In this document: one piece after another, positions 364 to 54,931 of the stretch | How positions within the stretch are numbered: position 1 is the stretch's first letter | Layout of the letters: every line of letters starts with the position of its first letter | DNA from: Hydrolagus colliei | Taxonomy: Eukaryota | Reading direction: 5' to 3' | DNA: 64,000 nt | Assembly (NCBI GenBank): GCA_035084275.1 | Contig: CM068775.1 | Span: forward strand, 1,302,001-1,366,000 | Translations under genes and position numbers: made by a program | Notes under the pieces: model-generated | Told to the model about the DNA's origin: nothing | What the model saw: only the letters and a program-made list of their open reading frames with translations | The model's database searches: none

Positions 364-675
364 GTGTCCAGGCCGATGTGGTGCTGACACAGCCGTCGTC
401 TCTAACCGGGAAGCCTGGCCAGGCCCTGAGACTCACCTGTAGAACCAGCGGGTTTGATCTCAGCAAATATGGCATGAACTGGGTCTGGCAGGTTCCTGGG
501 AAGTGGCTGGAATGGCTGCTCTACATTTCGTACACATCTGCGTCCAACAGTCGTTACACACCTGACATTCAAAGCCGTGTCACTGTTAACAGTAATAATT
601 CCAATAACATCATCGATCTGAACATCAAAAGTCCAACAGTTCACAACACCGCCATCTCTTACTGTGCAAGTGACT
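364..675 (+). pseudogene. IGHV: IgH variable segment V1 (IgM-like VH exon); leader exon absent from the window
   Basis: Acceptor TTCTTTACAG at 354-363; open frame [25 protein letters not shown]...[16 protein letters not shown]...TAISYCASD with both Ig cysteines and the conserved Trp; followed by a 23-bp-spacer RSS. Confidence 0.92.
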
Positions 676-714
676 CGCAGTGAGAGGCAACTGGGCTGGT
701 CTCCTACAAATACA
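676..714 (+). promoter_or_regulatory. V1 recombination signal (23-RSS) with variant heptamer
   Basis: CGCAGTG (676-682) + 23 nt + ACAAATACA (706-714); consensus is CACAGTG-23-ACAAAAACC. Confidence 0.85.
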
Positions 715-916
715 CGAGGGGAGGAAAGGCAGCCCCTCCCACCCTAAACTGAAGGGCAGTTATGGTGTCAATGCTGTGTCTGTAGCAAAGATTAAAGGAA
801 AAGCTTAGAATGGATTCCTTATCATTCCAAACCAATACAGTGAACGGTGGTTTGATGGGGGGTGAATGAGCTGCTTATTTGTGCTGTAATATTCTGTGAT
901 TTCAGCTGGTATGTGA

Positions 917-982
917 CACTGTGCTGTTTGAGGCGGGAAGCATTGCGATTGGAGACTGACTAGATGACAGTTCACAAATATC
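917..982 (+). other. Candidate degenerate IgH D1 segment (unit 1)
   Basis: CACTGTG (917-923), 17-nt CTGTTTGAGGCGGGAAG, CATTGCG (941-947; CACTGCG in unit 4), then ACAAATATC after a 26-nt spacer. No convincing 5' nonamer. The position matches D1 of chondrichthyan V-D1-D2-J clusters. Confidence 0.4.
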
Positions 983-1124
983 CTCTTATTACCAGCCGTT
1001 GGACATATTTGTTTTCTGTTTCTGTGGCTGTGAAGAAAGTGTTAGACAGACGCTGTGCCATGCCACAGGAAAATAGTCCATTTCAGTGAATGTTGGCAGC
1101 CAGTATAGAGCAGACACTGAGGTC

Positions 1125-1191
1125 AGTATGTGTATGGGACTGTGTCACTGTGTATACGGGGCTCACAGCATTAACTGTCAATACAAAAACC
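1125..1191 (+). other. IgH D segment (D2) flanked by 12/12 RSSs (unit 1)
   Basis: AGTATGTGT-12-CACTGTG (1125-1152), coding TATACGGGGCT (1153-1163), CACAGCA-12-ACAAAAACC (1164-1191; perfect nonamer). Confidence 0.9.
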
Positions 1192-1529
1192 CTTGAACAC
1201 CAAACCAGATAATCTCTCCCACTGCTGGCGTGTGTGGGTCCCAATTAACGTGAGGAGATTTGATATGTTTATAATGGGGCCTAACACTGAGGATTTTACC
1301 AGATTTTAATTGACATAAAAACATAAAATATAATCTTGAATCTGTTGGTGACAAGTGAAGGTGTTTGACGGGAACATTGCAAACTGGCAAAGATACAAAC
1401 ATTTAACAGCTAAACACAGAGCTGTGCAATTGTTTTCAGAACATTACAGAACTATACGGTTCCGGTATTTAGTTTGGGGAAATCACCATTTACAATAATA
1501 TGGTGTTTGTGTGGCCGGCCCTCACAGCA

Positions 1530-1616
1530 GGTTATTGCAGTGATCAGCACACTGACTGTAGCACTGTGACTACCTTGACTGCTGGGGACAAGGCACCATG
1601 GTGACAGTGACTAACG
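1530..1616 (+). other. IGHJ: IgH J segment J1 with 23-RSS
   Basis: GGTTATTGC-23-CACTGTG (1530-1568); coding 1569-1616 reads YLDCWGQGTMVTVTN (WGxG motif); phase-1 donor G|GTAAG. Confidence 0.95.
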
Positions 1617-1924
1617 GTAAGAAACAAACACTCACTCACAATGCTGAGTTTGGATTTATATGTTTATTTTATTCTCTTTAACAGCTATTTAATTTAATGA
1701 CCTGTGAGTTGCCAGGGCTATCTCAGAGTTTAGTGCAAGTTAAATTCATTTCACTGCTATTGCTTTCAACAGCCACTGTTGATTTAAGGATTATTCTGTC
1801 CATGTTTAGTTCATTGCTGGTGATATTTGTGGTGGTTAGTGACTGTACAGCTGAAGTTACACTGATGGACTTTCTGCAATGTCTGATAACGGTGACTGGC
1901 GGCTGCTGATTTTGGGTATAATCA

Positions 1925-2960
1925 GGAATTGTATAAAAGTGTTTGAAACTTTGCCCACATGTTGGGAATCAGGGCCTGAATGTTGTGGGATGAGCGACTT
2001 TAGCTGTGACCTGAAACTGGGAAGAGAGGGGATGAGGCAAAGGGAGTGAGGAAGGGAGTTCCAGAGCCTTGGGACATAGTCGCTGAAGCACAGCTGCCGA
2101 GGGTGGAGTGGAGAATTCGGGGGGACATGGAGGAGGCCAGACCCAGTGGAGTGAAGGCAGCGGGTGCCGGTTTGGGGAGAGCGGAGATCAGAGAGATAAG
2201 GAGGTGAAGAGGAATGGAGAGATTTGAATACAAGGGTGAGGATCTTGATGTCGATCCTCTCTGGGACAGGGAGCCAGTGAAGTCTGGCAAGGACTGGGGT
2301 AACGGGCAGCGAAGCTTGTAGCGGGTGAGTATGCAGGCAGCAGAGTTTGGGATTATCTGGATTTTGTGGATTGTGGTCGAGGGGAGACCGACGAGGAGGG
2401 TGTTGCAATAGTCCAGCTGAGAGGTGACAAAGGTGAGGAACAAGGTTTCAGCGGCTTTTGTGGTGAGGTATTGCCGGAGACGGGCGATCCATCGGAGGTG
2501 ATAGAAGGCAGTGCTGGTCATGGACCGGATGTGGGGGAGGAAGGACAGTTGGGGGTCGAACCTGATGCCAAGATTGCGCTCAGGTTTGGAGAGATTTAGG
2601 GGCCAGGCCGGGAAGGTGGAGGAGATGAGAGCCGTGTGAATGGAGACATGGACGATTGCCAAGGAGTATGGCCTCCATCTTGTCGACATTCAGCTGCAGG
2701 AAGTTCGCGCTCATCCAGCCCCTGATGTCTGACAGACAGACTGACAAAACATCAGGGGACTGGGGTCACAAAGTGAAGTGGAGAGATAGAGTTGGGTGTC
2801 ATCCGCGTACATGTGGAAGTGTGCCCCATGTCTGCGGATGACATCCCCAAGAGGGAGCGTGTAAATGAGGAAGAGGAGGGGGCCAAGGATGGATCCCTGG
2901 GGTACCCCACAGGTAACTGGGTGAGTGCAGGAGGAAAAAGCGTTTGTGCAGATATACTGC
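1925..2960 (-). mobile_element. L2 LINE 3' fragment in the J1 downstream intron
   Basis: Minus-strand frames carry L2 RT C-terminal motifs (LGIRFDPQLSFLPHI, SQLDYCNTLL, TPVLARLHWLPVPERI) with frameshifts; same insertion is present after J3. Confidence 0.85.
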
Positions 2961-3129
2961 TGGCAGTTTGTGAGGTAAAGTGAATTGACTATTTATTTGT
3001 GGGTGAAATGAGATGTTTAACACACAGTGACACTGGTCGCTGACAGCAAAATCTGAAAGCAGATTTCAGAGCTGATCAGCTCAAACTACAGAGACTGAGC
3101 TGAAGGTGAAAGGCATCAATTTCTCATTT

Positions 3130-3420
3130 CATTATCAATCTTAAAATACACAGTCATTTCACTTTACAGTAAATTCAGTTAAGTGCTTTGAGATGCCTAA
3201 AAGACTTGAAAAGTGCAATATGTAAAATAAGGAATTGGTCATTTCAATCCATGGCTGTTTGTGGGACATTGCTGTGCACAATTGGCTGCCACATTTTGCC
3301 AACAAGTATACAGTCAATTCACTTTACAGTTTATTCTTTGAAGCGCTTTGAAATGTCCAGAAGATGTGAAAAGCACTATATCAAAATATAAGGATTATTA
3401 TTATATCAAATGCTAGGATT
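3130..3420 (+). mobile_element. SINE body/tail
   Basis: Shares TGTGGGACATTGCTGTGCACAATTGGCTGCC core and ...GTGAAAAGCACTATATCAA tail with the headed copies at 26.9 and 27.7 kb. Confidence 0.7.
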
Positions 3421-3561
3421 ATTTATTTCATATTCCATGGTTTAGTTATCGTGTGTAACTTTGTGCTGCAGGGAATTGTGACTGTGAGTTACACTGCACC
3501 AGGTTTAATGCTTCATGTTGTGATGTGGAAGGACAGTGTGTGAGCTGGCTGGGCAGTTACT

Positions 3562-3588
3562 GAGAGAGAGAGAGAGAGAGAGAGAGAG
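3562..3588. repeat. (GA)n microsatellite
   Basis: Run of GA dinucleotides. Confidence 0.9.
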
Positions 3589-4489
3589 CTTCGGGCTGAG
3601 AGAAAGAGAATATTGAGTGATTTGTGGATTATTGGATGGAAACAGTTTGTGTTCGAGATGTCAGGGTTCAGTCTGTGATTGTGTGTTAGACCTGATTAAA
3701 CAGCATTGAGCAGTGTAATAGCTAATGGCTGAACAGGGATATCTGACAGTGTCTGCAGAGCTGTTGGGAGCTGGGGTCAGTGCGTTACGTTTCTCCCGAG
3801 TTCTTCAGAATAACCGGATTCTAAATTCAAATTAATTTGAAGGTTATTATTAATTGGAGGCAAATCTCTAAAGTAAAGATATATAACGGGCTCCCAGTGT
3901 TAGGCTAGTCTCTGGCTTTATCAATGGTTTATTAAATTTATTTATAAGTAACAAGGCAGTGGCCAAAGGGGCAGGAAACAGACCCACAGATACCAGCGTC
4001 ACTTGTGGTTCATTGTTAACATCACCTGTGCTGCCTGTCTGTCTGTCAGCCTGGGTCAGATTTACTACAACATGAAAAAACATGACGTTTAAATGTCGCA
4101 GAATAAATTGCTTTAATAAATGTCAGTAAATCAGAAAATCTCAACTATTTCATTTTCAAGCAATTGTATAAATGTGTAAGATTATCCGTAGATCTGTGTA
4201 ATCGTGAAATAAATATTGATTGGCAAACAATTTTTAAAACTTAATCAATTAATTAACATTTCAATTGAGATTAAATCAACTAAGCATCATTTAAATTTCC
4301 GCTATTTTTGAAAAGCCACAGAGACCACTCTTTTAACACCCATCTGAATGCAGTCTGGGTCTCGGTTTAATGTCTCAGTACATATTTACACACATACATA
4401 CACATACATACAACACACCCATCACACGTAACAATAATTATTATTATTATACATTATGATTATTATATTATAATATTATTATTACACAT

Positions 4490-4790
4490 ACATGATAATA
4501 GTAATCCATGGATTTGATATAGCACTTTTCACATATTCCAGATATCTCAAAACGTTACCCAGAATATACTATAAATTGAATTGACTGTATATTTGTGGGT
4601 GAGTCAGCCGATCAATTGCAGTGTCCCGCAAATAGTCGTGGACCAATGATGTTATTTTTTTCATCTTGAGGGATTATTAGCAGGTGCATGGAATAAGGAA
4701 ACTTGTCCAAGGTTTTACCCTGCTGGGAATTGAACCCAGATAACTCGCTGGTAAGGCGAGTGCTCCAATAACTGAGCTACAGGATACAGG
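4490..4790 (-). mobile_element. tRNA-derived SINE
   Basis: Reverse complement has a TAGCTCAGTTATTGGAGCAC A-box, a GGTTCAATTCC B-box, and the family body and tail. Confidence 0.75.
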
Positions 4791-5758
4791 AATCTGACTC
4801 CAACAGGACACATGCACAAACTCACACACACTCATGTAAATACGCACTCAAAACGATACAGATATGCACACTCATACATACAAACATATAGATATATATC
4901 TACAAACACGCATTCAACACACAACTTATACAAGGCCACAGATTGCTTTGAAGGTCAGGATCAGGATCTTGAAATGAATCCCATGGGTTTTGGGGAGCCA
5001 ATGAATCAGGTGAGAATGGGAGAGATGGGATCATGGGGCATGGATCAGTAGCATCAGTCTCTATGGCCTCCCATGGATCACAGGAGGCCATAGAGATACT
5101 GTCCAGCGTGGAGGGCGTTATATAAATTGCAGTTGTTGTTACATCTCAAACCTTTAGCAAACTCTTTCATACAGGTTGGATTTGTGGCCTTGTTGTAAGG
5201 TTATCTGCATTAAACAATCAGCAAAGTTATTTAAGCAATGTAATTATGGGCATTACATTTCTTCCTTTCTCTTGATTTCTTTCTATATTATAATTTGGAA
5301 CGTCCAGCAACATGAATCAATAATATGATCGTAGAATTGATCAGTGCCTTTTCTGAATATCCGCAAGTATTTAGCATTTTATGATAATTTAGAAAAAGTA
5401 TTATGGAATCACTTATAATCCCACCTGAATAGACATCCTTTGATCCTTTGATTCTCCACCAGGTCTCAGATTCAAAGCCCTGATTATTCCCATTTCTGTA
5501 CTTGACTTAAAAGTGAGATACATGGGTGTTTTTCGTAGAAGATCAGGCTGAAAACTTGGGCACATTTCCTCACTCCACACACCTGATAATAATCCCTCAC
5601 AAAAAACAATAACAAAATTGGTAATTTCAATCCAGTACTGTTTGTGGGATACAGCTGTGAGCAATTGGCTGCCCACCAATATACAGTCAAAAATTACGTT
5701 ATATTCTGTGAGGTGCTTTGAAACGTCTAGAAGACATGAAAAGGCGATACATCACATG

Positions 5759-8700
5759 CAACAACAACAACATCAACAAATTACATTTATAGAGCGCCTT
5801 TCACGTCGGGAGGACGTCCCAAGGCACTGTACAGGAGGCGTGTGACCTGAGCTGGGAGGGGAGTGTTTGGGAAGGGGTGAAACACGAAAGGGAGGTAAAA
5901 AAGTTTGGGGTGGAACAAAAGGCACGATCGAAGAGGAAAGTCTTCAATCCGGCCTTGAAAGAGGAAAGGGAAGAGACAAAACGGAGGGATTGATGGATGG
6001 CATTCCATAGGGTGGGAGCGAAGAAACTGAAGGCCCGGCCTCCGATGGTGGGGCGGTTCAGGCGGGGGGCTTGGAGCAGGCCAAGTCCTGTTGAACGGAG
6101 GGTCCGGGTGGGCGTGTAGGGGGAAAGTAGATTGGTTAGATACGGCGGGGCAAGGCCGTGTAAGGCCTTGTAGGTGAGGATGAGGATCATGAACTCGATC
6201 CTCTGGAGGATGGGGAGCCAGTGGAGACGGGCGAGGGTGGGGGTTATGTGATCGCAGAGGCGGGTGCGGGATAATACACGGGCTGCAGAGTTTTGGATGG
6301 CCTGCAGCCTGTGAATGGAGGAACTGGGGAGGCCGACGAGGAGAGAATTTCCGTAGTCCAGCCGTGAGGTGATGTACGCGTGCACGAGTGTTTCGGCAGC
6401 GCGGGGGGTGAGATAGTTGCGGAGCCTGGCAATATTGCGCAGGTGGAAATAAGCGGTGCCGGTCAAGGCGCGGATGTGGGGGAGGAAGGAAAGTTTTTGA
6501 TCGAACATGATGCCGATGTTCCTGATTGGCTTTGTGAGGTGGAGAGTGCAGCCTTGGATATTGAGGCTGTCAGCGACCGATGTGAGGAGGCGCTGGCTTG
6601 AGCCAATCAGGAGGGCCTCGGTCTTACTCACGTTCAATTGCAAGAAGTTCTCCCTCGTCCACGACTCGATGTCGGACAGACATGCTGTCAGTACATCGAT
6701 CGTCTGGGGGTTGAGGGATGAGGCATAAAGGTACAACTGGGTGTCGTCCGCATACATGTGGAAATTTACCCCATGTTTGCGGATGAAGTTGCCCAGAGGG
6801 AGCGTGTAACGGGTGAAAAGGAGGGGACCGAGGACAGAGCCCTGAGGGACGCCGTGAGAAACTGTGCGGGGGTTTGAAGAAAAACCATTGGAAGAAACAA
6901 AATGTAAACGGTGGGTCAAATAAGAGTGGAACCAGTCAAGGACTGTGCCTTGAAGGTTGAGGTGGGAGGAAAGACGTTGAAGGAGGATGGTGTGATCGAC
7001 TGTGTCGAACGCAGCAGACAGGTCAAGGAGGACGAGGAGGCAGAGGGAGCCCTGGTCACAGGTGGTTAAGATGTCATTTGTGACCTTGACCAGGGCAGTT
7101 TCTGTGCTGTGGATAGGGTGGAAACCTGATTGGAGGGGTTCAAGAAGTGAGTGAGTTGAGAGTAAAGAGCGGAGCTGGGAGGCAACCACTCTTTCAAGGA
7201 CCTTGGATAAAAACGGGAGGTTGGAGATGGGTCGATAACTTGATGGTTGCAACGCATCAAGGGAGGGTTTCTTCAGGATAGGGGTGATGGTGGCTGTTTT
7301 AAGGGAGGTAGGGACGGTGCCTGAGGAGAGGGAAAGGTTAATAGTGTCAGAAATTGGCGGGGCTAACAAATGGAGCTGGATGCGGAGGAGTGGGGTGGGG
7401 ATGGGGTCCAATGAGCACGTGGTGGGTTTCATGGAGGTAATTGTTTTAGAGACTGAAAGCGTGGTGGTGGGGTTGAAAGTGTGAAATGGGCGGTGAGTAG
7501 GAGTTGAGGTAGCTGATGAGGGCGCGGAGGTGGAGGAGTGGTGGGGGGAGGAAACCGCAGAGCGGATTTTCTCAATTTTGGACTCGAGGAAGTCCAGCAT
7601 CTCCTCACAACGAACGTTTGAGGAGAGGATCTGCGATGTGAGGCGGGGGGGGGGGGGGGGGGGTGGAGGAGCTGGTTGCTGGTGGCGAAGAGGAGGCGGT
7701 GGTTGTCCTTCGCTTCCAGGATTATCCTGGAGTAGAAGGCTGATTTGGCGGTGGCTAGGGCGGAGCGGTAAAATTTGATGCGGTCCAGCCAGATTTGCCG
7801 GTGGACCGTGAGGCCAGATTTGAGCCAGGTGCGTTCAACTGCTCTCACTTGGCTTTTGAGGGAACGGAGGTGAGTTGTGTACCACGGAGATGATCGGGAA
7901 TGGGAGACGGATTTGGAGGTGTGGGGGGCCAGGGTGTCAAGGGTAGTGGAGAGGGTGTTGTGGAGGGCGGTGGAGGTGGAGGATGGGTCGGTCGGTACAA
8001 AAAAAATGCCATTGTGGGAAGAGGTCGGAGGTTTCTAGGGCAGAGGTGAAAGTTTGAGGGGGAATCTTCTTCCAGGGCCGGTATAAGATGGTGGTGGGTT
8101 TGTAAGTGGAGGGGGGAGGGATAGAGGTGTTGCAGGAAATGAAAAAATGGTCGGAAATGGCCTTGTCTGTGATGGTGACGCCAGAGACGTTGAGGCCTCG
8201 GGTGATCACCAGATCGAGAGTATGGCCGTGGGTGTGGGTGGCAGTGTTAATGTGAAGGGAGAAGTTGAAAGACGAAAGTAAAGAGGAAAATTCAGAGGAA
8301 ATGGGGCAGGAGGGGGAAAAATGGAGGTTGAAATCGCCAAGAATAATAAGGCGATCAGAGGAGGTGCAAAGGGAAGTTAAAAGTGAAGAAAAATCTGAAA
8401 TGAAAGTGGGGGAGGGTTTGGGGGGGCGATAAACTAATAGGATTTTGAAAGAATTGTGGCAGGAGTGAGAGAGGGTGAGCTGTTCGAAAGAGGGGGAGCT
8501 GTTCGAAAGAGGGGAAGGAGCCGGAGGAATAGGGGGATAGGGCGAGGGATGACTTTGAGATGAGGGCCACACCACCGCCACAACGGTTGGGTCGAGGAGC
8601 ATGGTGGAATGTGTAGTTGGGTGATGTGGCTTCAACGAGGCCGAAAGTGTCGCCTGGGGTGATCCAAGTCTCCGTCAGGGCCATGATGTCAACGTTCTCA

Positions 8701-9070
8701 TCAAGGATGAGATTGTTGATGGCCAGGGTCTTGTTGCAGACAGAGCGGATATTTTGGAGGCCGATGCGGAAAGAGCAGTTGGCCGAGGGGTGTGAGGGGG
8801 GACTGGGGTGGTCGGCGGGGAGGGTGGGGATCTGAATAAGGGAGGAGAGGTTGACCCCCCGGGTTTGTGTCCGGTGGGGCTGGCGGTGATGGTGGGGGAC
8901 AGGGCACTTGGTGTGACTGCTATTGGACAACCAACGCCGAGTGCCACGGTGAGCCCGACGGAGGATTCCAATATTGGAACAGAAGGAAGCCGTGGGAGGG
9001 TCGAGCAGGGACAGTAGGCAAGGAGGGCGAAGAGAAAAAAGTGTAGAGAAGGAATAACGGAGAGCATTGT
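5759..9070 (-). mobile_element. Near full-length L2 LINE ORF2 (APE endonuclease + reverse transcriptase), frameshifted
   Basis: APE motifs LQNIRS, ALTETW, GGGVAL, VYRPP, GDFNLH (8930-7937); 599-aa RT frame 7600-5801 with [42 protein letters not shown]; 3' tail (TTG)n at 5759-5776. Confidence 0.95.
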
Positions 9071-9109
9071 ACTGGCTGAGTTAGTTATGATGGAGAAGTA
9101 TAAAGATAA

Positions 9110-14440: not shown

Positions 14441-14726
14441 GTAGGATTACACCTAAACTGTTCTTCCGTTTGTGCGAAATGATCTTCAGACAATGAGTAG
14501 ATTGAAAAGGTCATATTTATTCAGCACTGTAAACGAGTTACAATACAGGTACTCTTCTTGCGATTCGAACACAACCCGTATATACCGGTAACTACAATGC
14601 ACCAATCACAATACTGTTGCTAATCAGTTTCTCTGCTTACACCTTGTACTGGCGCCTTCCTGGTCATCTACATACTGTTGACCTCTTCTCTGCTTGTCCT
14701 AATATGGGCCTGTCCTTGTGCTTGAT

Positions 14727-26629: not shown

Positions 26630-26875
26630 GGTGGAGACACTGAGATAGATTTCCAGAGGCTGGTGCCTTGTCAATAGAGAATACCATTGGTGACATTGAA
26701 GTGATGGGGCAGACACATTTCAACAGTGGGCGAAACATTTGTGCATGTAAATGTGATATATAAATATTATTTATCACATTACCTGTTGTCGTAACGAAAG
26801 AAACAGATTTGTTCCCTACAATAGTGTTGGAATGTCCTCCCGACATGAGCTGCTCTATACATATGTAATACATAT

Positions 26876-44800: not shown

Positions 44801-47800
44801 GGACTTTCCCCTCCTATCATTTTGACATACTGTCCCACGATGAACCTGCCCACCACTACATTAAGTGGGCTCCAGCCTGCTCCATATCCCTCACCCAACA
44901 TGCCCTACCATCAGTGGCTGGGCTTAAAGCGTCTCTGCCCCCTCTCTCTGGGACTCCATCGCAGATTCCCTTCACCTCGCTCCCTCTCTCGCTTCCTTCA
45001 ATGCTGGTGTCAAGAGTCTCCTCTTTGAATGTGCCTTCTTTTCCTCGCCCAACTCTCTCCCTCCTTTCTCATCTCTCTTTTGTCCCTCCGAACTCTCTCC
45101 ACTCCTTCCCCCTACATTGCCCCTCTTCCCGGCTCAGGTCCTGACCTGACTGTTCAGCCCCTTGGGACGTCCTCCCGATATGAAATGTTCTCTATAATGT
45201 CACTTTGTTGTTGTGGTGGCCGCCCAGTAAAAGTGTGTCTGTGACACCGGGCATCACAGAGCACATACTGTGGGCACACACTGCAGTTACACCTGGTGGC
45301 CACACCCGCTGACTGTGGCGCTGTGGCGTCCTGCACAGAGAAATCTCAACAGTGACAACAACAACAAAATGACATGTTTAAAGCACAGAGTCCTCCCACA
45401 GGAGCCCTCCCAATGGTCATTGTGTATCAAGACTGAGATTGATAGATTTGTAAAGGAGAGAGGAATTCGGACACAATGGGCTGAATGGCCTCCTCCAGTG
45501 CTGTATAATTCCATGATTGAACACATTTTATCTATTAATTTTACTTTTTATTCTACCATTACTGATTTACCAATCACAGCCACTTCAGATGACCTGACAG
45601 CTGCTGTTGATGTTGTTGCTGTTGGAGTGAAGGGAAATAAAGTATGAAAGGTCAGGCTGTGGGCTCTGTGGTGTGAGGGCAGGAAGCTGATCACTGATTG
45701 ACTGCAGACAATCACAGCTGCTTCCTGACAATTGTGCTGTGAGTTTCTGTCCCACCTGAAGGCAGCTTGACTCATCCTGTGTCTTTCCAGCAAAAAGTCT
45801 TTAGATACAAACAGCAGCATCTTGTGTAGGGTTTTGCAAATGAGCTGATCTGCAACGTAAACATCTGTTCTATAACATCTGCAAATTATCATTTCCTGTA
45901 AACTCAAAGTCAGAAAAATAAGGCTAAACATCAAAGAAATAAGTGACACAGGACTATCCATAGTTCTGTTCATTGATCAGGAAATCCAGCCTCTCTTATT
46001 GATTGTTTTTTGTAATAATACTACAGAAACGTTTTTATTTATCAAAGCCGGAATATTTTGTGAGGTGACCATGGAGCTGTTCTGTGTCTTGTTGTCTATG
46101 AGCCATGAGTAACAAAAATACTCGGATTAGATATAGTGCTTTTCACATCTTCTAAACTGTGTCTCAAAGCGTTTCACAGAATATACTGCAAAGTGGATTG
46201 ACTCTATAGTTGTTGGCGAAACACGGCAGCTAATTGCACAAAGCAATGTCCTGGATTGAAACGACCAAATTGTTATAGGTTTCTTGGGATGCATTATTAT
46301 TCAACATGTGGAGTAAGGAAACTTGCCCTAGGCATCGCCCTGCATGGAATTGAAACAGAAGTCTCACGGTTGACAGTCGAGGGCTCCAACCATTGAGTTA
46401 CAGGACTCCTCTGTGATCACAATTTTCCTGTCATGTGGGATTGATGTTGTGCTCACAGGTTTGCTGTAAGATAGGAGGCCTTGTAGATCTTGTACAGTTT
46501 CCAGATCCAGTGCCCAAAGGAGAATTCAAGATTCAGCGGTGGATCCTCATGTCTCAAAGTTGAATCCTGTATCTCAGGGGTTAGAGCACTCACCTCGCAA
46601 GCCAGAGACTAGGGTTTGATACCTGGCAGGACAAAGCCTTGAGCAAGTTTCCTTACACCCCACTTCTGATAATAAGCAATCAAGATAATAAAATAATAAT
46701 AAATGACTGAAACCACTTCTGATACAAGCCTCATGTTATTTCTTCCCAGTTTCCTTCTCCCCCTTGTCCTGAAGGAGTGTGACTGGTCTGACATTACACT
46801 GGGCTCCCACTGCACCAGCAGCCCTCCCCACCTGGCTTCTCACCCCAAGAGAACATTTCATGTCTGGCTTGAAATCATGAGCCGCCACATCAAACCGTTC
46901 ACCACCATTGCACTATTTCATAACCAATCAAGCTTGTGATTACAGTAAATGCAGCGACTGAGAACAGAGAGGATTATTATTATAAGTGGACTGAAGGCTG
47001 AATTCATTCCCATTATCTTCCAATCCGGAGATAATTATTGTGGCCACGTTTGACATCGACACTGACAATAAGATAGACTTCCTCAAATGTAAGAGAACAG
47101 AGAGGAAAGTAGGAGTAAGGACACATCGACAAGTGATAAAATAGAAAAAAAGAGATTAAAATTGCCAGGAACATAATTTAATATCAATGTATCCACATCA
47201 AAATGCCAGTTGAAGTATCAAGAGGATTCATGCCTTCATGCCCATATGTGATGTGAAATCAGGATTGAAAGAGCAGGAAACAGGGAGTAATCATCTGCAG
47301 TTGATCAGAACATCACTAAACTATAGGAAATAATAAACATTTTAATTAAGGCACAATGTTAATTATTGCACATAAAATAAACAGTTACTACACTTTATAA
47401 TGCATTTTGTGAAGTTCCTTTAGACATTTCAATAACATGAAAAGGAATTATGTCAAATGCAAGGTTTATGATCAAAAAGATTATTATGTAAACTTAAGAA
47501 AATAACAATTGCAGCACAAAAGACACAGGTCCATCTGGATTGCCTTCCACAATCCTGGCCGCCACACATACTTGTCATCTCCTCAACAATATACTGTATC
47601 ACAAAATATTATTTTCAAAAGTAACCCAGGGATTCTATTTTTTTCTGCTGCCACTGTTTCCCTAACTTTAACAGTCACTCACTGAAATAGGGTTCCCGTA
47701 GGTTTTGTTGAACTTACCAATTACTCCACTCACTCTCACACACACACACACACACACACACATTAAAGGAAACAATTCATGAGGCTTCAGGGTCAGTGCT

Positions 47801-48068
47801 GGGGCTAATACTATTGAAACTTATATTAATATGAATTTGCGGTCAATGCCGAATGTAAAGGGCACAATTATTGATCTGTGCAGGTCAGAGGGAATGTGAG
47901 AGGTGACTCCCCTCAGTCCTGTAGCTGTTGGTCCATTCTCCAAACACCTGGCCCCACTGCCCCTTGTTAAATAGCGGTCACTGGGGACTGAGGCCATCTG
48001 TCCATCCGGCAGATCTTTGTCCCTCGGTTATTGGGCTCAAGGGTCAGTTCTGACAATTGCCCAGAAAC
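41840..48068 (+). repeat. Spacer block (copy 3), ending in the V3 promoter
   Basis: Paralogous to copies 1 and 2; L2 42320-43270, SINEs 46115-46410 (-) and 46555-46680 (+), (CA)n at about 47737-47762. Confidence 0.9.
47930..48068 (+). promoter_or_regulatory. IgH V3 promoter region
   Basis: TTAAATA at 47967-47973, E-boxes CACCTG/CATCTG/CAATTG, no octamer. Confidence 0.55.
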
Positions 48069-48549
48069 ATGAGGTCCCTGATATCTCTCAGTCTGTTGCT
48101 GGCTCTCTTCTCCCGTGAGCTGTATTATTGGGACAAGTCTGACTGTGTGTGTGTGTGTGGGGGTGTGATTCTCTCTGCAATGTCACAGAGCCGGGATATC
48201 TCACAATAATTAATCTTCGGTCATTTGTTCTTTACAGGTGTCCAGGCCGATGTGGTGCTGACACAGCCATCGTCTCTAACCGGGAAGCCTGGCCAGGCCC
48301 TGAGACTCACCTGTAGAACCAGCGGGTTTGATCTCAGCAAATATGGCATGAACTGGGTCTGGCAGGTTCTTGGGAAGGGGCTGGAATGGCTGCTCTATAT
48401 TTCGTACACATCTGCGTCCAACAGTCGTTACACACCTGGCATTCAAAGCCGTGTCACTGTTAACAGTAATAATTCCAATAACATCATCGATCTGAACATC
48501 AAAAGCCCAACAGTTCACAACACCGCCATCTCTTACTGTGCAAGTGACT
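48069..48549 (+). CDS. IGHV: IgH V3: leader exon + complete V exon (open frame)
   Basis: Leader 48069-48114; intron GT..AG; V exon 48238-48549 (312 nt) [22 protein letters not shown]...[14 protein letters not shown]...TAISYCASD. Confidence 0.93.
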
Positions 48550-48588
48550 CGCAGTGAGAGGCAACTGGGCTGGTCTCCTACAAATACA
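48550..48588 (+). promoter_or_regulatory. V3 23-RSS with variant heptamer
   Basis: CGCAGTG-23-ACAAATACA. Confidence 0.85.
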
Positions 48589-48790
48589 GGAGGAGAGGAA
48601 AGGCAGCCCCTCCCACCCTAAACTGAAGGGCAGTTATGGTGTCAATGCTGTGTCTGTAGCAAAGATTAGAGGAAAAGCTTAGAATGGATTCCTTATCATT
48701 CCAAACCAATACAGTGAACGGTGGTTTGATGGGGGGTGAATGAGCTGCTTATTTGTGCTGTAATATTCTGTGATTTCAGCTGGTATGTGA

Positions 48791-48856
48791 CACTGTGCTG
48801 TTTGAGGCGGGAAGCACTGCGATTGGAGACTGACTAGATGACAGTTCACAAATATC
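48791..48856 (+). other. Candidate degenerate D1 segment (unit 4)
   Basis: CACTGTG (48791-48797) + CTGTTTGAGGCGGGAAG + CACTGCG (48815-48821); spacer to ACAAATATC is 26 nt. Confidence 0.4.
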
Positions 48857-48998
48857 CTCTTATTACCAGCTGTTGGACATATTTGTTTTCTGTTTCTGTG
48901 GCTGTGAAGAAAGTGTTAGACAGACTCTGTGCCATGCCACAGGAAAATAGTCAATTTCAGTGAATGTTGGCAGCCAGTATAGAGCAGACACTGAGGTC

Positions 48999-49065
48999 AG
49001 TATGTGTATGGGACTGTGTCACTGTGTATACGGGGCTCACAGCATTAACTGTCAATACAAAAACC
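48999..49065 (+). other. IgH D2 segment with 12/12 RSSs (unit 4)
   Basis: AGTATGTGT-12-CACTGTG, TATACGGGGCT (49027-49037), CACAGCA-12-ACAAAAACC. Confidence 0.9.
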
Positions 49066-49404
49066 CTTGAACACCAAACCAGATAATCTCTCCCACTGCT
49101 GGCGTGTGTGGGTTCCAATTAATGTGAGGAGATTTGATATGTTTATAATGGGGCCTAACACTGAGTAATTTACCAGATTTTAATCGACATAAAAACATAA
49201 AATATAATCGTGAATCTGTGGGTGACAAGTGAAGGTGTTTGACAGGAACATTGCAAACTGGCAAAGATACAAACATTTAACAGCTAAACACAGAGCTGTG
49301 CAATTGTTTTCAGAACATTACAGAACTATACGGTTCCCGGTATTTAGTTTGGGGAAATCACCATTTACAATAATATGGTGTTTGTGTGGCCGGCCCTCAC
49401 AGCA

Positions 49405-49491
49405 GGTTATTGCAGTGATCAGCACACTGACTGTAGCACTGTGACTACCTTGACTGCTGGGGACAAGGCACCATGGTGACAGTGACTAACG
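49405..49491 (+). other. IGHJ: IgH J3 with 23-RSS
   Basis: GGTTATTGC-23-CACTGTG (49405-49443); coding 49444-49491 YLDCWGQGTMVTVTN; donor G|GTAAG. Confidence 0.95.
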
Positions 49492-49799
49492 GTAAGAAAC
49501 AAACACTCACTCACAATGCTGAGTTTGGATTTATATGTTTATTTTATTCTCTTTAACAGCTATTTAATTTAATGACCTGTGAGTTGCCAGGGCTATCTCA
49601 GAGTTTAGTGCGAGTTAAATTCATTTCACTGCTATTGCTTTCAACAGCCACTGTTGATTTAAGGATTATTCGTTCCATGTTTAGTTCATCGCTGGTGATA
49701 TTTTTGGTGGTTAGTGACTGTACAGCTGAAGTTACACTGATGGACTTTCTGCAATGTCTGATAACGGTGACTGGCGGCTGCTGAGTTTGGGGTATAATC

Positions 49800-50650
49800 A
49801 GGAATTGTATAAAAGTGTTTGAAACTTTGCCCACATGTTGGGAATCACGGTCTGAATGTTGTGGGATGAGCGACTTTAGCTGTGACCTGAAACTGGGAAG
49901 AGAGGGGATGAGGCAAAGGGAGTGAGGAAGGGAGTTCCAGAGCCTTGGGACATAGTGGCTGAAGCACAGCTGCCGAGGGTGGAGTGGAGAATTCGGGGGG
50001 ACATGGAGGAGGCCAGACCCAGTGGAGTGAAGGCAGCGGGTGCTGGTTTGGGGAGAGCGGAGATCAGAGAGATAAGAAGGTGAAGAGGAGTGGAGAGATT
50101 TGAATACAAGGGTGAGGATCTTGATGTCGATCCTCTCTGGGACAGGGAGCCAGTGAAGACTGGGAAGGCTGGGGTAACGGGCAGCGAAGCTTGTAGCGGG
50201 TGAGTATGCAGGCAGCAGAGTTTTGGATTATCTGGATTTTGTGGATTGTGGTCGAGGGGAGACCGACGAGGAGGGTGTTGCAATAGTCCAGCTGAGAGGT
50301 GACAAAGGCGAGGAACAAGGTTTCAGCGGCTTTTGTGGTGAGGTATTGCCGGAGACGGGCGATCCGTCGGAGGTGATAGAAGGCAGTGCTGGTCATGGAC
50401 CGGATGTGGGGGAGGAAGGACAGTTGGGGGTCGAACCTGATGCCAAGATTGCGCACAGGTTTGGAGAAATTTAGGGGCCAGGCCGGGAAGGTGGAGGAGC
50501 TGAGAGCCGTGTGAATGGAGACATGGACGATTGCCAAGGAGTATGGCCTCCATCTTGTCGACATTCAGCTGCAGGAATTTCACGCTCATCCAGCCCCTGA
50601 TATCTGACAGACAGGCTGACAAAACATCAGGGGTCACAAAGTGAAGTGGT
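49800..50650 (-). mobile_element. L2 fragment after J3 (paralog of 1925-2960, truncated by a deletion)
   Basis: Near-identical to the unit 1 copy until about 50650, then joins the 3' end of the ERV LTR. Confidence 0.85.
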
Positions 50651-51142
50651 CTTTAAATCACTGTAACTTTAAGAAATGTTGGGACATTATTTTGAACTCT
50701 CGGGATTGAAAATTCCAACCATTACAGTACTAGGAGGCCAAGATAGTGCAGTATTGTGAAAGAGTTCAGGAAGTGTAATTTTTTTTCAATTTTTAATTAA
50801 TCAAATAATTTGCCCCCAAAATTTCATAGTGTGCAATCATGCAGCTCGATGATTAGAGCCGTCACCAAGTAAGCCAGTGACCTGCGTTTGATTCCCAGCG
50901 GGATGAAACATTTTACAATTTTCCTCGTGCCACACACCTCTGTTTACCTAGCAGTGTGCAATTCTCATGTGAAAACACTATTGTTTATTCACTGGTCTGG
51001 AACTAATTGCATTAATTACATTTATTCATTGTTCAAGTTGTACTTAGCATTCACTATAAGTACAAATTTCTTTCACTCTGAGCTCAGTGAGTTCATTGAA
51101 GCCTCCACTTCAGGAGGAAAACACCAGAGTGTAAAACAGGGC

Positions 51143-53167
51143 ATGGAATTTCCAACACTATACGCTATAGTAGCTATTTACTACCCCATTCTGGTAGCAT
51201 TTGGAATTCCGGGTAATTCTATTTGTTTTCATGGTCTGGCAATTGTGAAGAGACTAGTTCAATTGAACTTTTGTATAGTGGCTTGTCATGTCTACTCGAA
51301 ATCTCAAATCAGTTCAAAGAATATACGGCAAAGTCAAATGACTTTGTGTTTGTGGGCGAAAGGCGAGAGCTAATTGTGTATTTCTGTGCCCTACAAACTT
51401 TCATGGACCAAACGTCTGGTCCGTTATTTCCCGCCAAGCCGGAGTATTCAATCCACGCTGATCGAAACCTGTCATCATACTGGCAGACAGACTTGATACT
51501 TTCTTGATGGCAGGCGGATATTTTATTCCAATCAATTTGAGCTGGACCTTGGTTGCAAAGCCAGGTTTGGACAGCCGTCCATCCTGCTTCCAAGTTCCCA
51601 CCATCAGGTCCCATTGCCACAGTTACTTGTTTTTGCAGCAAACGCGCATCTCAACCCGTGGCCATCATAGACAATATTTGGACCCTGTCTTGAGGGTGTA
51701 AGCGGTAGATCATATGCAAATGATTGAGCTGCTCCCAAATTTTTATGGCACCTTTCCGGGGATCAGATAGTGATTTGGACCAATTGTCGATCTTTTCTGG
51801 ATCGGCTGGAGCATGGATCGACACCAGTATATCCCGAAAAGCCCCGGGTACTGTGACATTAGCTTGTCGACCTCGATGCACCGCTGTCACTTGTGGCACA
51901 CGTGGGGGAGGGAGGACAGTTGAGGGTAAAACAAGACACCCTGGTTCCTGACTGACTTCGAGAGTTGGAGAGTGCAGTGTTGTGATTTCCGATCCCGAGA
52001 ATACAAAACAATGATCCAACAATTCTTAATAAAGGTATAGAGATTTAATAATTATAAACAATTTTAAAATGATAGAATAAAAGATTCATACTACCAGTCC
52101 CATTTAGAATACAATGCAGGATTCAGGCTGTTACACCATATGTCAGGTTCAGGCTTCTCACAATACTCACTCCTTCTGACTTTCCATCTCTAACTGACCC
52201 TTCTCTGCCTGTAAAACAAAACAACTGGAACCATGATCCGCTCCAGTAGATCTGGACAACAGTGACAGGCTGGAGATCTCGGTTTACCCTGAGACACTCC
52301 CTAACTGTTGTGATGAGCCACTCTTTCTCTCCTACCTCATTCTCCACCATAACTAAGTCAGCCAGTTGATCACTTGGAAATTGTCCAGAAGCGATGTCAA
52401 AACCAGACTATCTAAAGGCCAGAGTTGTACGGAGTTGTTTGCCTCCCTTCTTTTCCCAGACCTTGAGATGGCTCTCCTGCTACTCACTTGGCAATTGCCC
52501 AAATGAGTACAATTCTTTGTGCCTTTGTTAATTGAGTCCTCTGTCCCTATCTATATCTTGAGCTGTTCTCCTTCAATTCTTTATTTATCACAGAAGCTAC
52601 TGATGTTATTGTGCCCCTTGGATTATTGGCATGGACCAGTATCCAAGATTGTCTCAGCGCAGGGGAATGTGCACCTGGTGTTTTGGGTAGACAAGTTGTT
52701 TCTCTCCCTTTTGCTCAAGGTTGCTGACCATGCCTGTTTTGTGGATAGATGGTTTTAATTGGTGCCTGATTCGAACTAACTATAATTAATTTTTAATACA
52801 GTACCTCCATATCCCAACAGCAGCCTTGAATGCCGATGCTGCCAGTGCCTGTGTTGTGGAGTTGCTGACATGAGTTAATCAGGTGGATATTCAACTAGGT
52901 GCATGGGAAGATTTCTTAAGGATTGGGATGATAGTTGCTGTTATGAAGGAGACGGGAATGATGCCGAATAAAAGGGACAGGTTGACTGTATCAGCAAGTA
53001 GTAGGGTAAGGTGGTGGAGCTCTGAGGTAAAGAGACGAGTTGGGATGGGATGCAGGGAGTGGACTTCATGGAGGATACGGTTGTGATGACAGAGGATGGG
53101 GAAACATGTTCTCCCCATCCTCATCCATTCTGAAGTTGTAGAAGTAAGTCAATCGACCGACCGACCG

Positions 53168-53210
<43 letters not shown>

Positions 53211-54931
53211 CTTACAGTTATATATTGCCTTTCATGTCAAGAGGATGGCCCAAGGCACTCTACAGTTTGGTAGGGACAAGAGCATTTGGGGGAGGGGCCG
53301 GGTCAGGATGAAGAAGAATAGCAAAATTAACTATATTTGTGGGCAAAATGTGACAGCCAAATTATGCCCAGGATGGATGGGTAGATGATGGGGTGTGGGA
53401 GGGTGGTGTGTGGGGGCAGAAGTTGGAAGGGTGTTGACAGCTAAGTGGATTCCCTTGATTTTGGTCTCGAGATCATCCAGCATCTCCACACAGTGGGAGT
53501 TGTAGGAGAGGATCTGTGATATGGACGGGGAAGGGTGGAGGAGCTGGTTTGTTGAGGAGAACAGGAACTTGTGGTTGTCCTGGATTATCCTGGAGTAGAA
53601 GTATGATTTGCTGGAGACCAGAGCAGAGAGGTAGTTTTTGGTGTGCCAGATATGCCAGTGGACCATTAGACCAGATTTGAGCCAGGTACGTTCAGCGCCC
53701 GTCACCTGATCTTTGAGGAACTGGAGGTGGCTGGTGAACTAGGGTGAGGTTCGAGAGTAACACTTTGGAAAGAATCAGGAGAAATCATTTTGCTGATTGT
53801 TTAATGCAGGCTACCTTACAACAAGGCCACAATTCAAAACCGTATGAAAGGTTTGCTGAAGGTTTGAGATATGGACAATTTTCTAAAGTAATTGAATCAA
53901 CTCAAAGAATAAACAACCAAATATGACACACCCTTAAACTCCTCATCTCACACCTATATTCATGTGAATAATTTTTCCTATTTTCTTTCCTACACACAGT
54001 TAATTTGCTGGCGATTGTGATCCTGTCAAGAGGAAACTGTGGCCTCTCAATGTGCGTCACTCGCTATCTGGTGGCCATGGCAGCCGCGGATCTCCTGGTT
54101 GTCCTCGTGGATGTGTTGTTAAACCAAATTAACAATCTGTATTTCCCATTAAATTTCTTATTCTACACTCCAGTGTGTAGTGTTAGAGTGGTGTTGATGA
54201 GTGCAGCATTGCTCATGTCTTTGTGGTTCACTGTTGCTTTCAGTTTTGACCGATTTATCGCCATTTGCTGCCAAAAGCTGAAACCAACATATTGCACGGA
54301 GAGAACGGCCACAGTGGTTACTGTAACTCTGTCTGTTTGTTGCTGCGCAGTCAGCATTCCTTGTTACTTTATATTTGATCCTCAGTTCACAGTTAACAAT
54401 ACCCCGTGGTACTGTATCTTCAAACCAAACATTTATACTTTGCTCACCTGGAAATTATACGAAAGGTTTATCCGTGTTTTTAATCCACTGTTTGTGTTTG
54501 CTTTGATTTGCCTGTTCAATGCTGTGATTATCAGACACATTCTGATGGCCAGTAAAGTCCGCAGGAGGCTTCGGGGTCAGAGAAAAGCTGAGAAAACAAT
54601 TGATCCCGAGTTGGAAAACCGAAGAAAATCCATAATTTTACTGTTCGCCATATCAGGCACTTTTATAATTTTGTGGATAACATATGTTCTACATGCCCTC
54701 ATATGGCAACTTTCCAATTTTAATTATAGCGAAACATTGGTCAATAACACCCGATATATTGTCCAAGAATCTGGACTCATGGTGCAAAAGTTGAATTGCT
54801 GTACAAACACCTGTATATATGCATTAACTCAGAAAAAGTTCAAAGAGGAGTTTAAGAAAGGGTTAGTTTATCCCTTTGATATCATTGCTAAATTAATTAT
54901 AAAATACCAGAAAAAATCATTAGGAAAGTAA
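51143..54931 (+). CDS. GPR139-like class A GPCR, copy D (two exons, 333 aa, intact)
   Basis: Exon 1 51143-51212 (MEFPTLYAIVAIYYPILVAFGIP); exon 2 54000-54931; ADLL, TPVC, FDRF, WYC and NTCIY all retained. Confidence 0.9.
51400..51977 (-). mobile_element. ERV gag capsid fragment (frameshifted)
   Basis: ...EKIDNWSKSLSDPRKG...IYRLHPQDRVQIL and IDWNKISACHQESIKSVCQYDDRFRSAW; the latter fits the retroviral major homology region spacing Q-x4-S-V-x2-Y-x2-R (conserved E replaced by K). Confidence 0.6.
51978..52819 (-). mobile_element. Solo LTR, 842 bp, 4-bp TSD
   Basis: Minus-strand termini TGTTGGGA...TCACAACA; TSD GCAG at 51974-51977 and 52820-52823; empty site GAGAGTGCAGCCTTG in the copy C intron. 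Confidence 0.88.

Follow-up and report, generated by a model that had tools for sequence, protein, structure and literature searches.

A tandem array of GPR139-like genes with IgH segments upstream

The window, i.e., the whole 64-kb stretch of DNA analyzed here, contains 4 GPR139-like genes with 2 exons each, arranged as a tandem array on the + strand, and IgH-type leader, V, D, or J sequence lies upstream of 3 of these 4 genes. The closest relatives were found in Callorhinchus milii, and the genome is holocephalan-like. The array comprises the following features, with each receptor gene given from the ATG of exon 1 to the end of exon 2:

243–2781, + strand: Ig block of unit A (leader-intron remnant, V1, D1 remnant, D2, J1)
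2782–11828, − strand: repeat-rich stretch of ~9 kb splitting unit A; unit D lacks it, with 50649 directly followed by 50650
12327–17322, + strand: GPCR-A, pseudogene; exon 1 12327–12397, exon 2 16391–17322
19828–25160, + strand: spacer copy 1 (self-comparison), LINE fragments inside
25277–25614, + strand: leader exon, leader intron, and first 173 nt of V2 (V2 exon from 25442)
25902–26629, no strand: assembly gap, 728 N, between contig 1 and contig 2
28179–28404, + strand: unit B remnant of the Ig-block 3' end, equal to 50721–50945 of unit D
28608–31976, + strand: GPCR-B, intact, 333 aa; exon 1 28608–28677, exon 2 31045–31976
32061–38303, + strand: spacer copy 2, ending at the unit C deletion junction (38297–38303, ACCTGGC)
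38492–41834, + strand: GPCR-C, intact, 333 aa; exon 1 38492–38561, exon 2 40903–41834
41919–47952, + strand: spacer copy 3
47953–50945, + strand: Ig block of unit D, the 2,993 bp missing from unit C
51143–54931, + strand: GPCR-D, intact, 333 aa; exon 1 51143–51212, exon 2 54000–54931

The distances from the Ig elements to the receptor genes agree with those given in an earlier note on this DNA: 10.7 kb from J1 to the ATG of GPCR-A, 3.0 kb from the break in V2 to that of GPCR-B (across the assembly gap), 0.19 kb from the deletion junction to that of GPCR-C, and 1.65 kb from J3 to that of GPCR-D. The spacer block described there as leading to the next Ig promoter region was likewise recovered by self-comparison, in 3 copies that are ~95% identical to one another. 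The proposed four-fold V(D)J-plus-GPCR unit holds with regard to the 4 receptor genes in tandem, but V-D-J is present only in units A and D, which leaves 2 complete units.

Self-comparison and block identities point to tandem duplication, as the units lie in the same orientation, share common junctions, and carry private insertions and deletions (the order across the gap being that of the scaffold). Divergence among units ranges from 2% to 14%, with units A and D being separated by substitutions (2–9%), a 9-kb insertion, and an inversion. The repeat-rich stretch in unit A contains a LINE with a reverse-transcriptase ORF (5804–7834) and endonuclease pieces (7940–9080), along with copies of tRNA-derived SINEs; GPCR intron sequence is also present there in inverted orientation (11060–11901).

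The coding sequences of GPCR-B, GPCR-C, and GPCR-D are intact (333 codons, GT/AG splice sites), whereas GPCR-A carries 3 lesions: an extra C in exon 1 (frameshift), an in-frame TGA in exon 2 (CC*VS), and a further TGA close to the C-terminus. Every gene has its own ATG-bearing exon 1, which encodes the N-terminus and about two-thirds of TM1, and the intron, in phase 1, lies inside TM1. The whole protein is covered by a 7TM architecture, with 7tm_1 spanning residues 25–297 of 333 (Pfam; E 6e-22 for GPCR-B and 1.5e-20 for GPCR-D). The receptor genes would be expected to operate from exons 1 of their own.

The sole PDB sequences matched at E ≤ 1e-5 were those of GPR139 (E 9e-12), and most database relatives carry the NCBI name "probable GPR139" or "GPR142"; judged by database matches and names rather than by a tree, the receptors are closer to GPR139/GPR142 than to other GPCR families. 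They are 47–72% identical to the shark, ray, and chimaera proteins listed, and the family is large in cartilaginous fishes, with 2,367 clusters at E ≤ 1e-10, of which nearly all of the top 120 come from named chondrichthyan species. While the 7tm_1 domain and the PDB match to GPR139 are shared with the orphan class-A receptors GPR139/GPR142 and their chondrichthyan-specific expansion, the window receptors are very divergent from mammalian GPR139 and differ in their two-exon structure with an intron inside TM1. Furthermore, their tandem array and a dN/dS near 1 are reminiscent of a chemoreceptor family rather than of a conserved receptor of the neuropeptide type.

IgH V, D, and J segments and their defects

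Within the Ig blocks of units A and D, the following elements were identified:

364–675, + strand: V1 exon, open reading frame
676–682 and 706–714: V1 RSS (heptamer CGCAGTG, 23-bp spacer, nonamer ACAAATACA)
917–923: D1 remnant of unit A, 5' heptamer only (CACTGTG)
1153–1163: D2 of unit A, with CACTGTG (1146–1152) on one side and CACAGCA (1164–1170), a 12-bp spacer, and ACAAAAACC (1183–1191) on the other
1530–1538 and 1562–1568: J1 RSS (nonamer and heptamer)
1569–1616, + strand: J1 coding sequence, then GTAAG donor
48069–48114, + strand: leader exon of unit D
48238–48549, + strand: V3 exon, open reading frame; heptamer CGCAGTG at 48550–48556
48791: heptamer of the D1 remnant of unit D
49027–49037: D2 of unit D
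49444–49491, + strand: J3 coding sequence with GTAAG donor; heptamer at 49437–49443

The V exons, starting at 364 (V1), 25442 (V2), and 48238 (V3), are of the VH type, as they match Pfam V-set (E 2e-8), have VH domains as their best PDB matches (per-domain E ~1e-15 to 1e-20), and are 69% identical to a V of C. milii. A leader and a short intron precede V2 and V3; V1 is without a leader, the leader exon of unit A being absent and homology to unit D beginning at 243. Both J1 and J3 read WGQGTMVTV, with DYLDCWGQGTMVTVTN followed by the splice donor (G/GTAAG), and ~1.45 kb, including a LINE fragment (49874–50447), separate J3 from the end of its block.

In units B and C, the Ig part is reduced. 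V2 ceases to match V1 and V3 at 25614, which is 288 bp short of the gap; 25615–25901 shows weak similarity to a dispersed repeat and nothing more, and 25615–28178, a range that includes the 728-N gap, contains no legible D, J, or 3' half of a V. The last 225 bp of the Ig block are retained on the same contig as GPCR-B, a remnant showing that the larger structure was once present in unit B. Unit C is devoid of any Ig sequence through a 2,993-bp deletion starting 117 bp upstream of the leader ATG; in unit D, ACCTGGC (47946–47952) directly precedes the block, and ACCTAGC (50939–50945) forms its last 7 bp. What had been read as a promoter without further Ig sequence in unit C is just common spacer, since that unit has lost the 117 bp preceding the leader ATG.

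The V heptamer reads CGCAGTG in both V1 and V3 and is mutated at position 2; C. milii V read-through models end in ...SQ or ...SQC, consistent with the heptamer TCACAGTG (back-translated, not read from DNA). No D1 3' heptamer was found in units A and D. Of the "D-D" noted earlier, D2 has both signals and stands, but D1 is a lone 5' heptamer. The signals of J (GGTTATTGC-23-CACTGTG) and D2 (CACTGTG and CACAGCA-12-ACAAAAACC) are acceptable; in a full RSS set, CAC-initiated heptamers would be present on V, on either side of D1 and D2, and on J, and the deviations from this are at V and at the 3' side of D1. V-to-D joining is unlikely because of the V heptamer and the missing D1 signal.

The conserved V framework residues (W-x-R-Q, D-T-A, and Y-Y-C) are altered as well, the window V reading WVWQ, HNTA, and SYC with the loss of the R, D, and Y hallmarks. 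All 6 V homologues reaching these framework positions have the R (W-x-R-Q) and the D ((E/Q/N/H)-D-T), and YYC is found in 5 of the 6 reaching that position (the exception, P0126, reads YYY); the truncated homologue P0125 shows FRQ only. Furthermore, no ATGCAAAT octamer was found near any leader. As a counterpoint to decay, the V exons are still open, the L-V3 splice signals are correct, and the D2 and J signals are good.

Search for a constant region

The absence of a CH exon after either J, as stated in the earlier note, was borne out by Pfam, a local C1-set HMM, and tblastn. The Pfam scan covered 298 open stop-to-stop pieces (148 on the + strand and 150 on the − strand) and gave nothing above noise except 7tm_1, V-set, RVT_1, and Exo_endo_phos, with 3 further matches being marginal and due to chance (E 0.004–0.007), while the best E of the local C1-set HMM and tblastn was 0.24 for all pieces of at least 25 aa. 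No C1-set (CH) exon was thus found on the + or the − strand of the window (the gap being unread), and Cmu exons a few kb 3' of J are absent within it, leaving 14.5 kb after J3 and 23.7 kb after J1 without C1-set.

A complete IgM cluster, with C-mu exons beyond 64000 or in the gap and the GPCR nested in a long J-C intron, would be compatible with the end of the window 14.5 kb after J3, the unread gap, and the intact D2 and J signals and J donor. However, Cmu1 lies 6.3–6.8 kb 3' of J in the nurse shark (PMC2435157), compared to the 14.5 and 23.7 kb that are C1-free here, and the next Ig element after J1 is another leader-V, not C exons. With the V defects (heptamer and framework residues) also speaking against it, we regard such a cluster as improbable. 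The Ig part looks dead, and we infer that its segments would do nothing, with no efficient recombination and no constant region to splice to.

Comparison with known Ig systems

The Ig blocks share with the chondrichthyan IgM minilocus (VH-D1-D2-JH-Cmu) the leader, ~120-bp intron, and VH-type V exon (PMC5192425, PMC2435157), as well as segments that are 230–400 bp apart and all within ~1.3 kb, signal spacers of 23 (V), 12/12 (D2), and 23 (J), and a J with WGQGTMVTV and a phase-1 donor; their closest V proteins are C. milii Ig V domains. Unlike the minilocus, they lack Cmu, TM, and secretory exons, with a GPCR following 1.65 kb after J, and they have a V heptamer mutated at position 2, a D1 without 3' signal, a framework without R, D, and Y, and no octamer.

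Human IGHV/IGHD orphons lie outside the IGH locus. Ig orphons and pseudogene clusters consist of Ig gene segments that gather defects, having either been copied away from their constant region or no longer possessing one that can be used (PMC2435157; PMC7555362), examples being the nurse-shark IgM pseudogene groups 6–8 and G2C (PMC2435157). The window segments correspond to this type in that they carry disabling changes and have no constant region available to them; in contrast to orphons elsewhere, they keep the whole V-D-J layout and appear to have been re-amplified as a passenger of a neighboring gene's tandem duplication. In the elephant shark and nurse shark, the TCR alpha/delta locus contains VH-type segments, likewise a case of an IgH-type V at a non-IgH position (PMC12227049). 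Those V genes are functional and used with TCR-delta D-J-C, whereas the V described here is accompanied by a D and a J of its own, carries a mutated signal, and is without any kind of partner C inside the window.

Origin of the Ig-GPCR linkage

The claim of the earlier note that a C-less fragment of an IgH cluster is physically linked to a GPR139-like gene, on its upstream side, is supported. We consider it likely that the locus arose by tandem segmental duplication of GPR139-like genes, with a truncated, non-functional IgM-cluster fragment as passenger. The sequence comparisons support a linkage older than the unit duplications, because the join is gap-free in A and D, B keeps the 225-bp block end, and C lost its block by deletion; the 4 adjacencies would represent one historical event that was copied, not 4 independent events. 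The amplification of the hybrid as one unit is thereby upheld as far as the linkage appears to predate the duplications, but the complete unit is present only in A and D.

Contig 1 (1–25901) holds unit A, spacer 1, and half of V2, and contig 2 (26630–64000) holds units B, C, and D; the adjacency of V2 and GPCR-B and the order of both contigs depend on a scaffold join. An assembly artefact, with misjoined Ig and GPCR sequences or falsely duplicated haplotypes, would fit this one scaffold gap inside the array, the abrupt stop of V2 288 bp short of it, and the frequency of mis-assembly in repeat-rich tandem arrays. It is nonetheless hard to reconcile with an Ig-GPCR join that is read without gaps in 2 diverged copies (A at 243–17322 and D at 47953–54931), which differ by substitutions, the 9-kb insertion, and the inversion. 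The divergence between units is far above allelic difference, and an independent third near-copy of V with a leader is present in public protein data (P0121, 96% identity), which makes an artefact quite unlikely.

The Ig blocks are 97.3–98.8% identical, compared to ~95% for the spacers and 86–94% for the GPCR introns. This high identity spans the whole 2.5 kb, including the LINE fragment, and stops at the heterology borders (243; 2781/11829), which fits the prediction for gene conversion and suggests that this process may lie behind it. Selection could also give higher Ig-block identity. Co-option of the Ig remnant as promoter or enhancer of the neighboring GPCR would explain both the similarity between units, with 97–99% for the blocks against 86–95% for the flanks, and the position of the block 190 bp upstream of the GPCR ATG. 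Yet, besides the extent of the identity, which gene conversion predicts, the octamer is absent, GPCR-C has remained intact although it lacks the block, and GPCR-A is dead despite having it, so that we give little credence to a regulatory role.

For the passenger fragment, we infer the following order of events from the observed anatomy, defects, absence of CH exons, and identity gradients. A duplicated V-D1-D2-J-Cmu piece would have broken off ~1.4 kb 3' of J, leaving it without C exons, and landed ~190 bp ahead of the ATG in one GPR139-like gene. Unequal crossing-over would then have duplicated the Ig fragment together with the GPCR and the spacer, as one block. Unit C may have lost its Ig block via the 2,993-bp deletion between 7-bp microhomologies, unit A its leader, with ~9 kb of repeats gained and its GPCR dying, while V2 would have been interrupted after block copying and gene conversion may have held the remaining Ig blocks 97–99% alike. 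A single chance linkage would be unremarkable, because the GPR139-like family is huge and IgM clusters are multi-copy, some being pseudogene clusters (PMC5192425; PMC2435157). No V or J was found within 10 kb of 2 other C. milii GPR139-like loci.

The earlier note had placed the GPCR in the position of C-mu; in a functional sense, this is not supported, given the receptors' own ATG exon 1, the disabled Ig part, and the intact unit C receptor without Ig. A working hybrid, in which splicing connects leader-V(-D-J) exons with the GPCR, whether or not V(D)J joining has taken place, and the GPCR functionally replaces C-mu, could draw on the shared strand, the short distance from J3 to the ATG, the open V ORFs, a J donor and exon-2 acceptor both in phase 1 (G/TT giving Val as in the native exon-1/exon-2 junction), and ~85 open codons with in-phase AG sites upstream of the GPCR ATG in A, B, and D. 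However, a phase match has a one-in-three chance, and splicing from J to exon 2 would remove residues 1–23, about two-thirds of TM1, with Pfam 7tm_1 beginning at residue 25 (N1.50). The impaired V-to-D joining and the lost framework hallmarks argue against it as well, unit C has an interrupted upstream frame although GPCR-C is intact, unit A is leaderless with a dead GPCR, and the protein search gave no homologue combining V-set and 7tm_1. A functional Ig-GPCR hybrid is therefore very unlikely, be it an Ig-driven GPCR transcript or a receptor whose ectodomain is of the antibody type.

It is most improbable that Ig-leader transcripts continue through V, whether or not it is joined to D-J, and splice from the phase-1 J donor to GPCR exon 2 or to an upstream in-phase AG (e.g., 50952 or 51114); if they did, a seven-transmembrane receptor would bear a V ectodomain of the antibody type, or a GPR139-like receptor would come under B-lineage control. 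The Ig sequence in this array looks like an ordinary pseudogene passenger rather than part of a new antibody-receptor hybrid.

Layout of the tandem array

The locus is best read as an Ig orphon pseudocluster, that is, a set of Ig segments parted from a usable constant region, which rides in a tandem array of GPR139-like genes; events of these kinds are already known, and the locus adds one more case. Self-comparison and block alignments delimit four same-strand units, A to D, each with a GPR139-like gene (GPCR-A to GPCR-D), which in units A to C is followed by a spacer, and with the V-D-J stretch upstream of the GPCR gene referred to here as the Ig block (V1 and J1 in unit A, V2 in unit B, V3 and J3 in unit D). 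The earlier note had described an IgH V(D)J and GPCR composite repeated four times, an anatomy that proved largely right with a count that was overstated. Across the long open pieces of both strands, Pfam recognized only four kinds of coding signal: rhodopsin-type GPCR, Ig V-set, LINE reverse transcriptase, and LINE endonuclease.

Features of the array (window positions)
243-2781: Ig block of unit A
2782-11828: LINE/SINE-rich stretch of unit A, about 9 kb
12327-17322, + strand: GPCR-A
19828-25160: spacer of unit A
25277-25614: leader and first 173 nt of V2, unit B
After the V2 break, unit B: 287 bp with weak similarity to a dispersed repeat, then the gap
25902-26629: the one gap in the 64-kb window, 728 N
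3' of the gap, unit B: about 1.5 kb with SINE copies
28179-28404: remnant of the 3' end of the Ig block, 225 bp, unit B
28608-31976, + strand: GPCR-B
32061-38303: spacer of unit B
38492-41834, + strand: GPCR-C, in a unit from which Ig sequence is absent
41919-47952: spacer of unit C
47953-50945: Ig block of unit D
51143-54931, + strand: GPCR-D
Past 55115: no further array members within the window

Several mobile elements accompany the array. The LINE at 5804-9080 (- strand) has a reverse-transcriptase frame that is open for 677 codons from stop to stop (RVT_1, E 5e-35) as well as endonuclease pieces and is probably a young element; fragments related to it were found in each spacer. tRNA-like matches at 4715-4786 (- strand) and at 23784-23855, 26884-26947, 28294-28365, and 37147-37218 (+ strand), one of which was called tRNA-Val by ARAGORN, mark the heads of a SINE that derives from a tRNA, measures about 300 bp, and has at least a dozen copies in the window. 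Part of the GPCR intron is repeated in inverted orientation just upstream of GPCR-A exon 1 (11060-11901 versus 14729-15263 and 51979-52820), which adds to the rearrangements of the dead unit A copy.

The GPR139-like genes and their family

In all GPCR genes, a first exon of 70 nt (MEFPT...AIP), which ends in phase 1 at a GTAAT donor, is separated from a second exon of 932 nt, which lies behind a ...CAG acceptor, by an intron measuring about 2.4-2.8 kb, or about 4 kb in the rearranged unit A. GPCR-B, GPCR-C, and GPCR-D are intact, encoding 333 aa with a full 7tm_1 domain (Pfam, E 6e-22), and GPR139 was the only protein whose solved structures were matched at E<=1e-5 (E 9e-12). GPCR-A is disrupted by one additional C in exon 1 and by two TGA codons, the first of them in frame and the second close to its end. 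Pairwise dN/dS among the three intact genes ranges from 0.43 to 1.41, which, together with their intact frames, fits a fast-evolving receptor family with maintained reading frames; the local copies thus behave in a chemoreceptor-like manner.

The family itself appears to be greatly expanded in cartilaginous fishes. Homologues fall into 2,367 clusters at E<=1e-10, to which single species (e.g., Heptranchias perlo and Heterodontus francisci) contribute dozens of distinct entries; the best 120 come nearly all from named cartilaginous-fish species, and most are called "probable G-protein coupled receptor 139". In the literature searched, there was no description of a chondrichthyan GPR139 expansion. 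The nearest proteins come from the elephant shark Callorhinchus milii (72% and 64% identity for the GPCRs, 69% for the V domains), and the exact products of GPCR-B, GPCR-C, and GPCR-D are absent from a public collection of 15 billion proteins; on this basis the source is read as a holocephalan, either Callorhinchus or a near relative. Exact look-ups of the two nearest V proteins matched no contig.

Ig segments and their defects

The V exons are of VH type, and the order and spacing of the Ig segments (about 240 bp from V to the D1 heptamer, about 225 bp from D1 to D2, and about 400 bp from D2 to J) agree with those of the shark minilocus (PMC5192425, PMC2435157). D2 and J look normal, with a J donor of the usual phase 1. 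Four features argue against Ig function. First, the V heptamer reads CGCAGTG in both complete copies. Cleavage during V(D)J recombination depends above all on the heptamer's first three bases, CAC. Where C. milii V models run on through the signal, their ends (...SQ or ...SQC) are consistent with TCACAGTG at this position, as judged by back-translation and not from a DNA read. Second, D1 has a 5' heptamer and no recognizable signal on its 3' side. Third, W, N, and S stand in place of the framework residues R (W-x-R-Q), D (D-T-A), and first Y (Y-Y-C), respectively, while homologues reaching those positions retain R, D, and Y, except for the public V-domain homologue P0126, which has YYY at the last. 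Fourth, no ATGCAAAT octamer was found near either leader, and V1 is without any leader.

A second public homologue, P0121 ("metaclust"), is a V protein of 131 aa that is 96% identical to V1 and shares its WVWQ, HNTA, and SYC; unlike V1, it has a leader, of which 12 residues are repeated. Its existence suggests that the V type has at least one further copy beyond the window.

No constant region in the window

The earlier note had placed the GPCR where C-mu should be and had named CH exons between J and TM among the finds that would speak against its reading. Searches by Pfam (both strands), HMM, and tblastn found none: Pfam detected no C1-set domain in 148 + strand pieces of >=62 aa or 150 - strand pieces of >=68 aa, and no match better than E 0.24 came from a local C1-set HMM, built from ten domains (of human IgM, IgG1, kappa, lambda, and beta-2-microglobulin), or from tblastn, applied to the full set of 1,640 pieces of >=25 aa. 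In the nurse shark, J and Cmu1 are separated by 6.3-6.8 kb (PMC2435157). No C-type exon was found across 14.5 kb 3' of J3 or 23.7 kb 3' of J1, where the next Ig element is another leader-V. The functional implication that a GPCR had assumed the role of C-mu was not borne out.

A working hybrid, with Ig exons spliced onto the GPCR, is a reading to which we assign very little probability. Since J donor and exon-2 acceptor share phase 1, splicing J to exon 2 would preserve the frame and recreate the native Val codon; it would also drop residues 1-23 and with them about two-thirds of TM1, given that the 7tm_1 match begins at residue 25. A longer fusion is conceivable, since some 85 codons ahead of the GPCR ATG are free of stops in its frame, with in-phase AG sites, in units A (about 12070-12326), B (28347-28607), and D (50873-51142). 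In unit C this frame is closed, yet GPCR-C is intact, and the open frame is probably a chance feature shared by descent. Also speaking against a hybrid are the defective V signal, the framework residues that were lost, and the absence of a leader from unit A. No fusion of an antigen-receptor V domain with a GPCR is known to us, and the literature searched held nothing relevant on an Ig-GPCR cassette.

Proposed origin and amplification of the linkage

A single linkage event, copied, accounts for all four adjacencies. IgM miniloci number 15-200 in cartilaginous fishes, pseudogene clusters included (PMC2435157, PMC5192425); both the IgM and the GPR139-like families are multi-copy there, with GPR139-like clusters in the thousands across species. 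No V or J was found within 10 kb at two other C. milii GPR139-like loci, a sample far too small for a statistic, and this absence is consistent with a local accident.

The gap divides the array into two contigs, so that the V2/GPCR-B adjacency and the order of A before B depend on scaffolding. The joining of Ig and GPCR sequence is unaffected by the gap, being read continuously in units A and D. V2 ceases to match V1 and V3 at 25614, 288 bp ahead of the Ns, and its truncation therefore lies in read sequence and is not an effect of the gap; the first ~90 bp past the break resemble a dispersed repeat that is also present in C. milii loci, and 25615-28178 contains no match to the V 3' half, D, or J. 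Haplotig duplication between the two contigs was ruled out, given that the GPCR blocks differ by 6-9% and show large structural differences.

By GPCR and intron identity, units B and C are sisters (94-97%), as are A and D (93-94%), with intron identity of about 86% between the pairs. In unit C, CTCCAAACACCTGGC directly abuts AGAGTGCAATTC, and the flanks of this junction stand 2,993 bp apart in unit D. There, the Ig block comes directly after ACCTGGC (47946-47952) and has ACCTAGC (50939-50945) as its final 7 bp. These near-identical 7-mers bound the 2,993 bp missing from unit C, whose own copy lies at 38297-38303. We took them for the microhomology of a deletion event and considered an insertion that duplicated its target less likely. 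As unit B retains the last 225 bp of the block missing in C, a deletion in C is the simplest explanation, and the Ig-GPCR linkage predates the four units. A discrete late insertion of the Ig block bounded by the 7-mers is not preferred: the 3' end of the block survives in unit B, the sister of C, and the tract of high identity between A and D runs only to 50649, short of 50945, with no sharp step at 47952. The proposal that linkage came first and amplification as a unit followed is supported by gap-free Ig-GPCR sequence in units A and D and by the unit comparisons.

Block alignments gave identities of 97.3-98.8% for the Ig blocks, about 95% for the spacers, and 86-94% for the GPCR introns; the Ig tracts compared were 243-2781 versus 48113-50649, and also 25321-25614. 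The A-D high-identity tract halts exactly where the heterologous sequence of unit A starts (243 and 2781/11829), and to the right of the 2781/11829 border divergence rises to about 8%. Gene conversion bounded by heterology is the likeliest cause of the Ig-block similarity, selection on this 2.5-kb tract, which includes a LINE fragment, being less favored. This suggests recent gene conversion among passenger pseudogenes.

The main consequence is for annotation: the V, D, and J segments should carry the label of orphon pseudogenes and stay out of any count of the IgH repertoire, and GPCR-A should be labeled a pseudogene. Only the discovery of Ig-GPCR transcripts would make the locus important, since no such fusion is known to us. 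Gene conversion here probably acts on a non-functional passenger, and the locus provides an example of how fragments shed by cartilaginous-fish Ig miniloci are carried along as other gene families expand.
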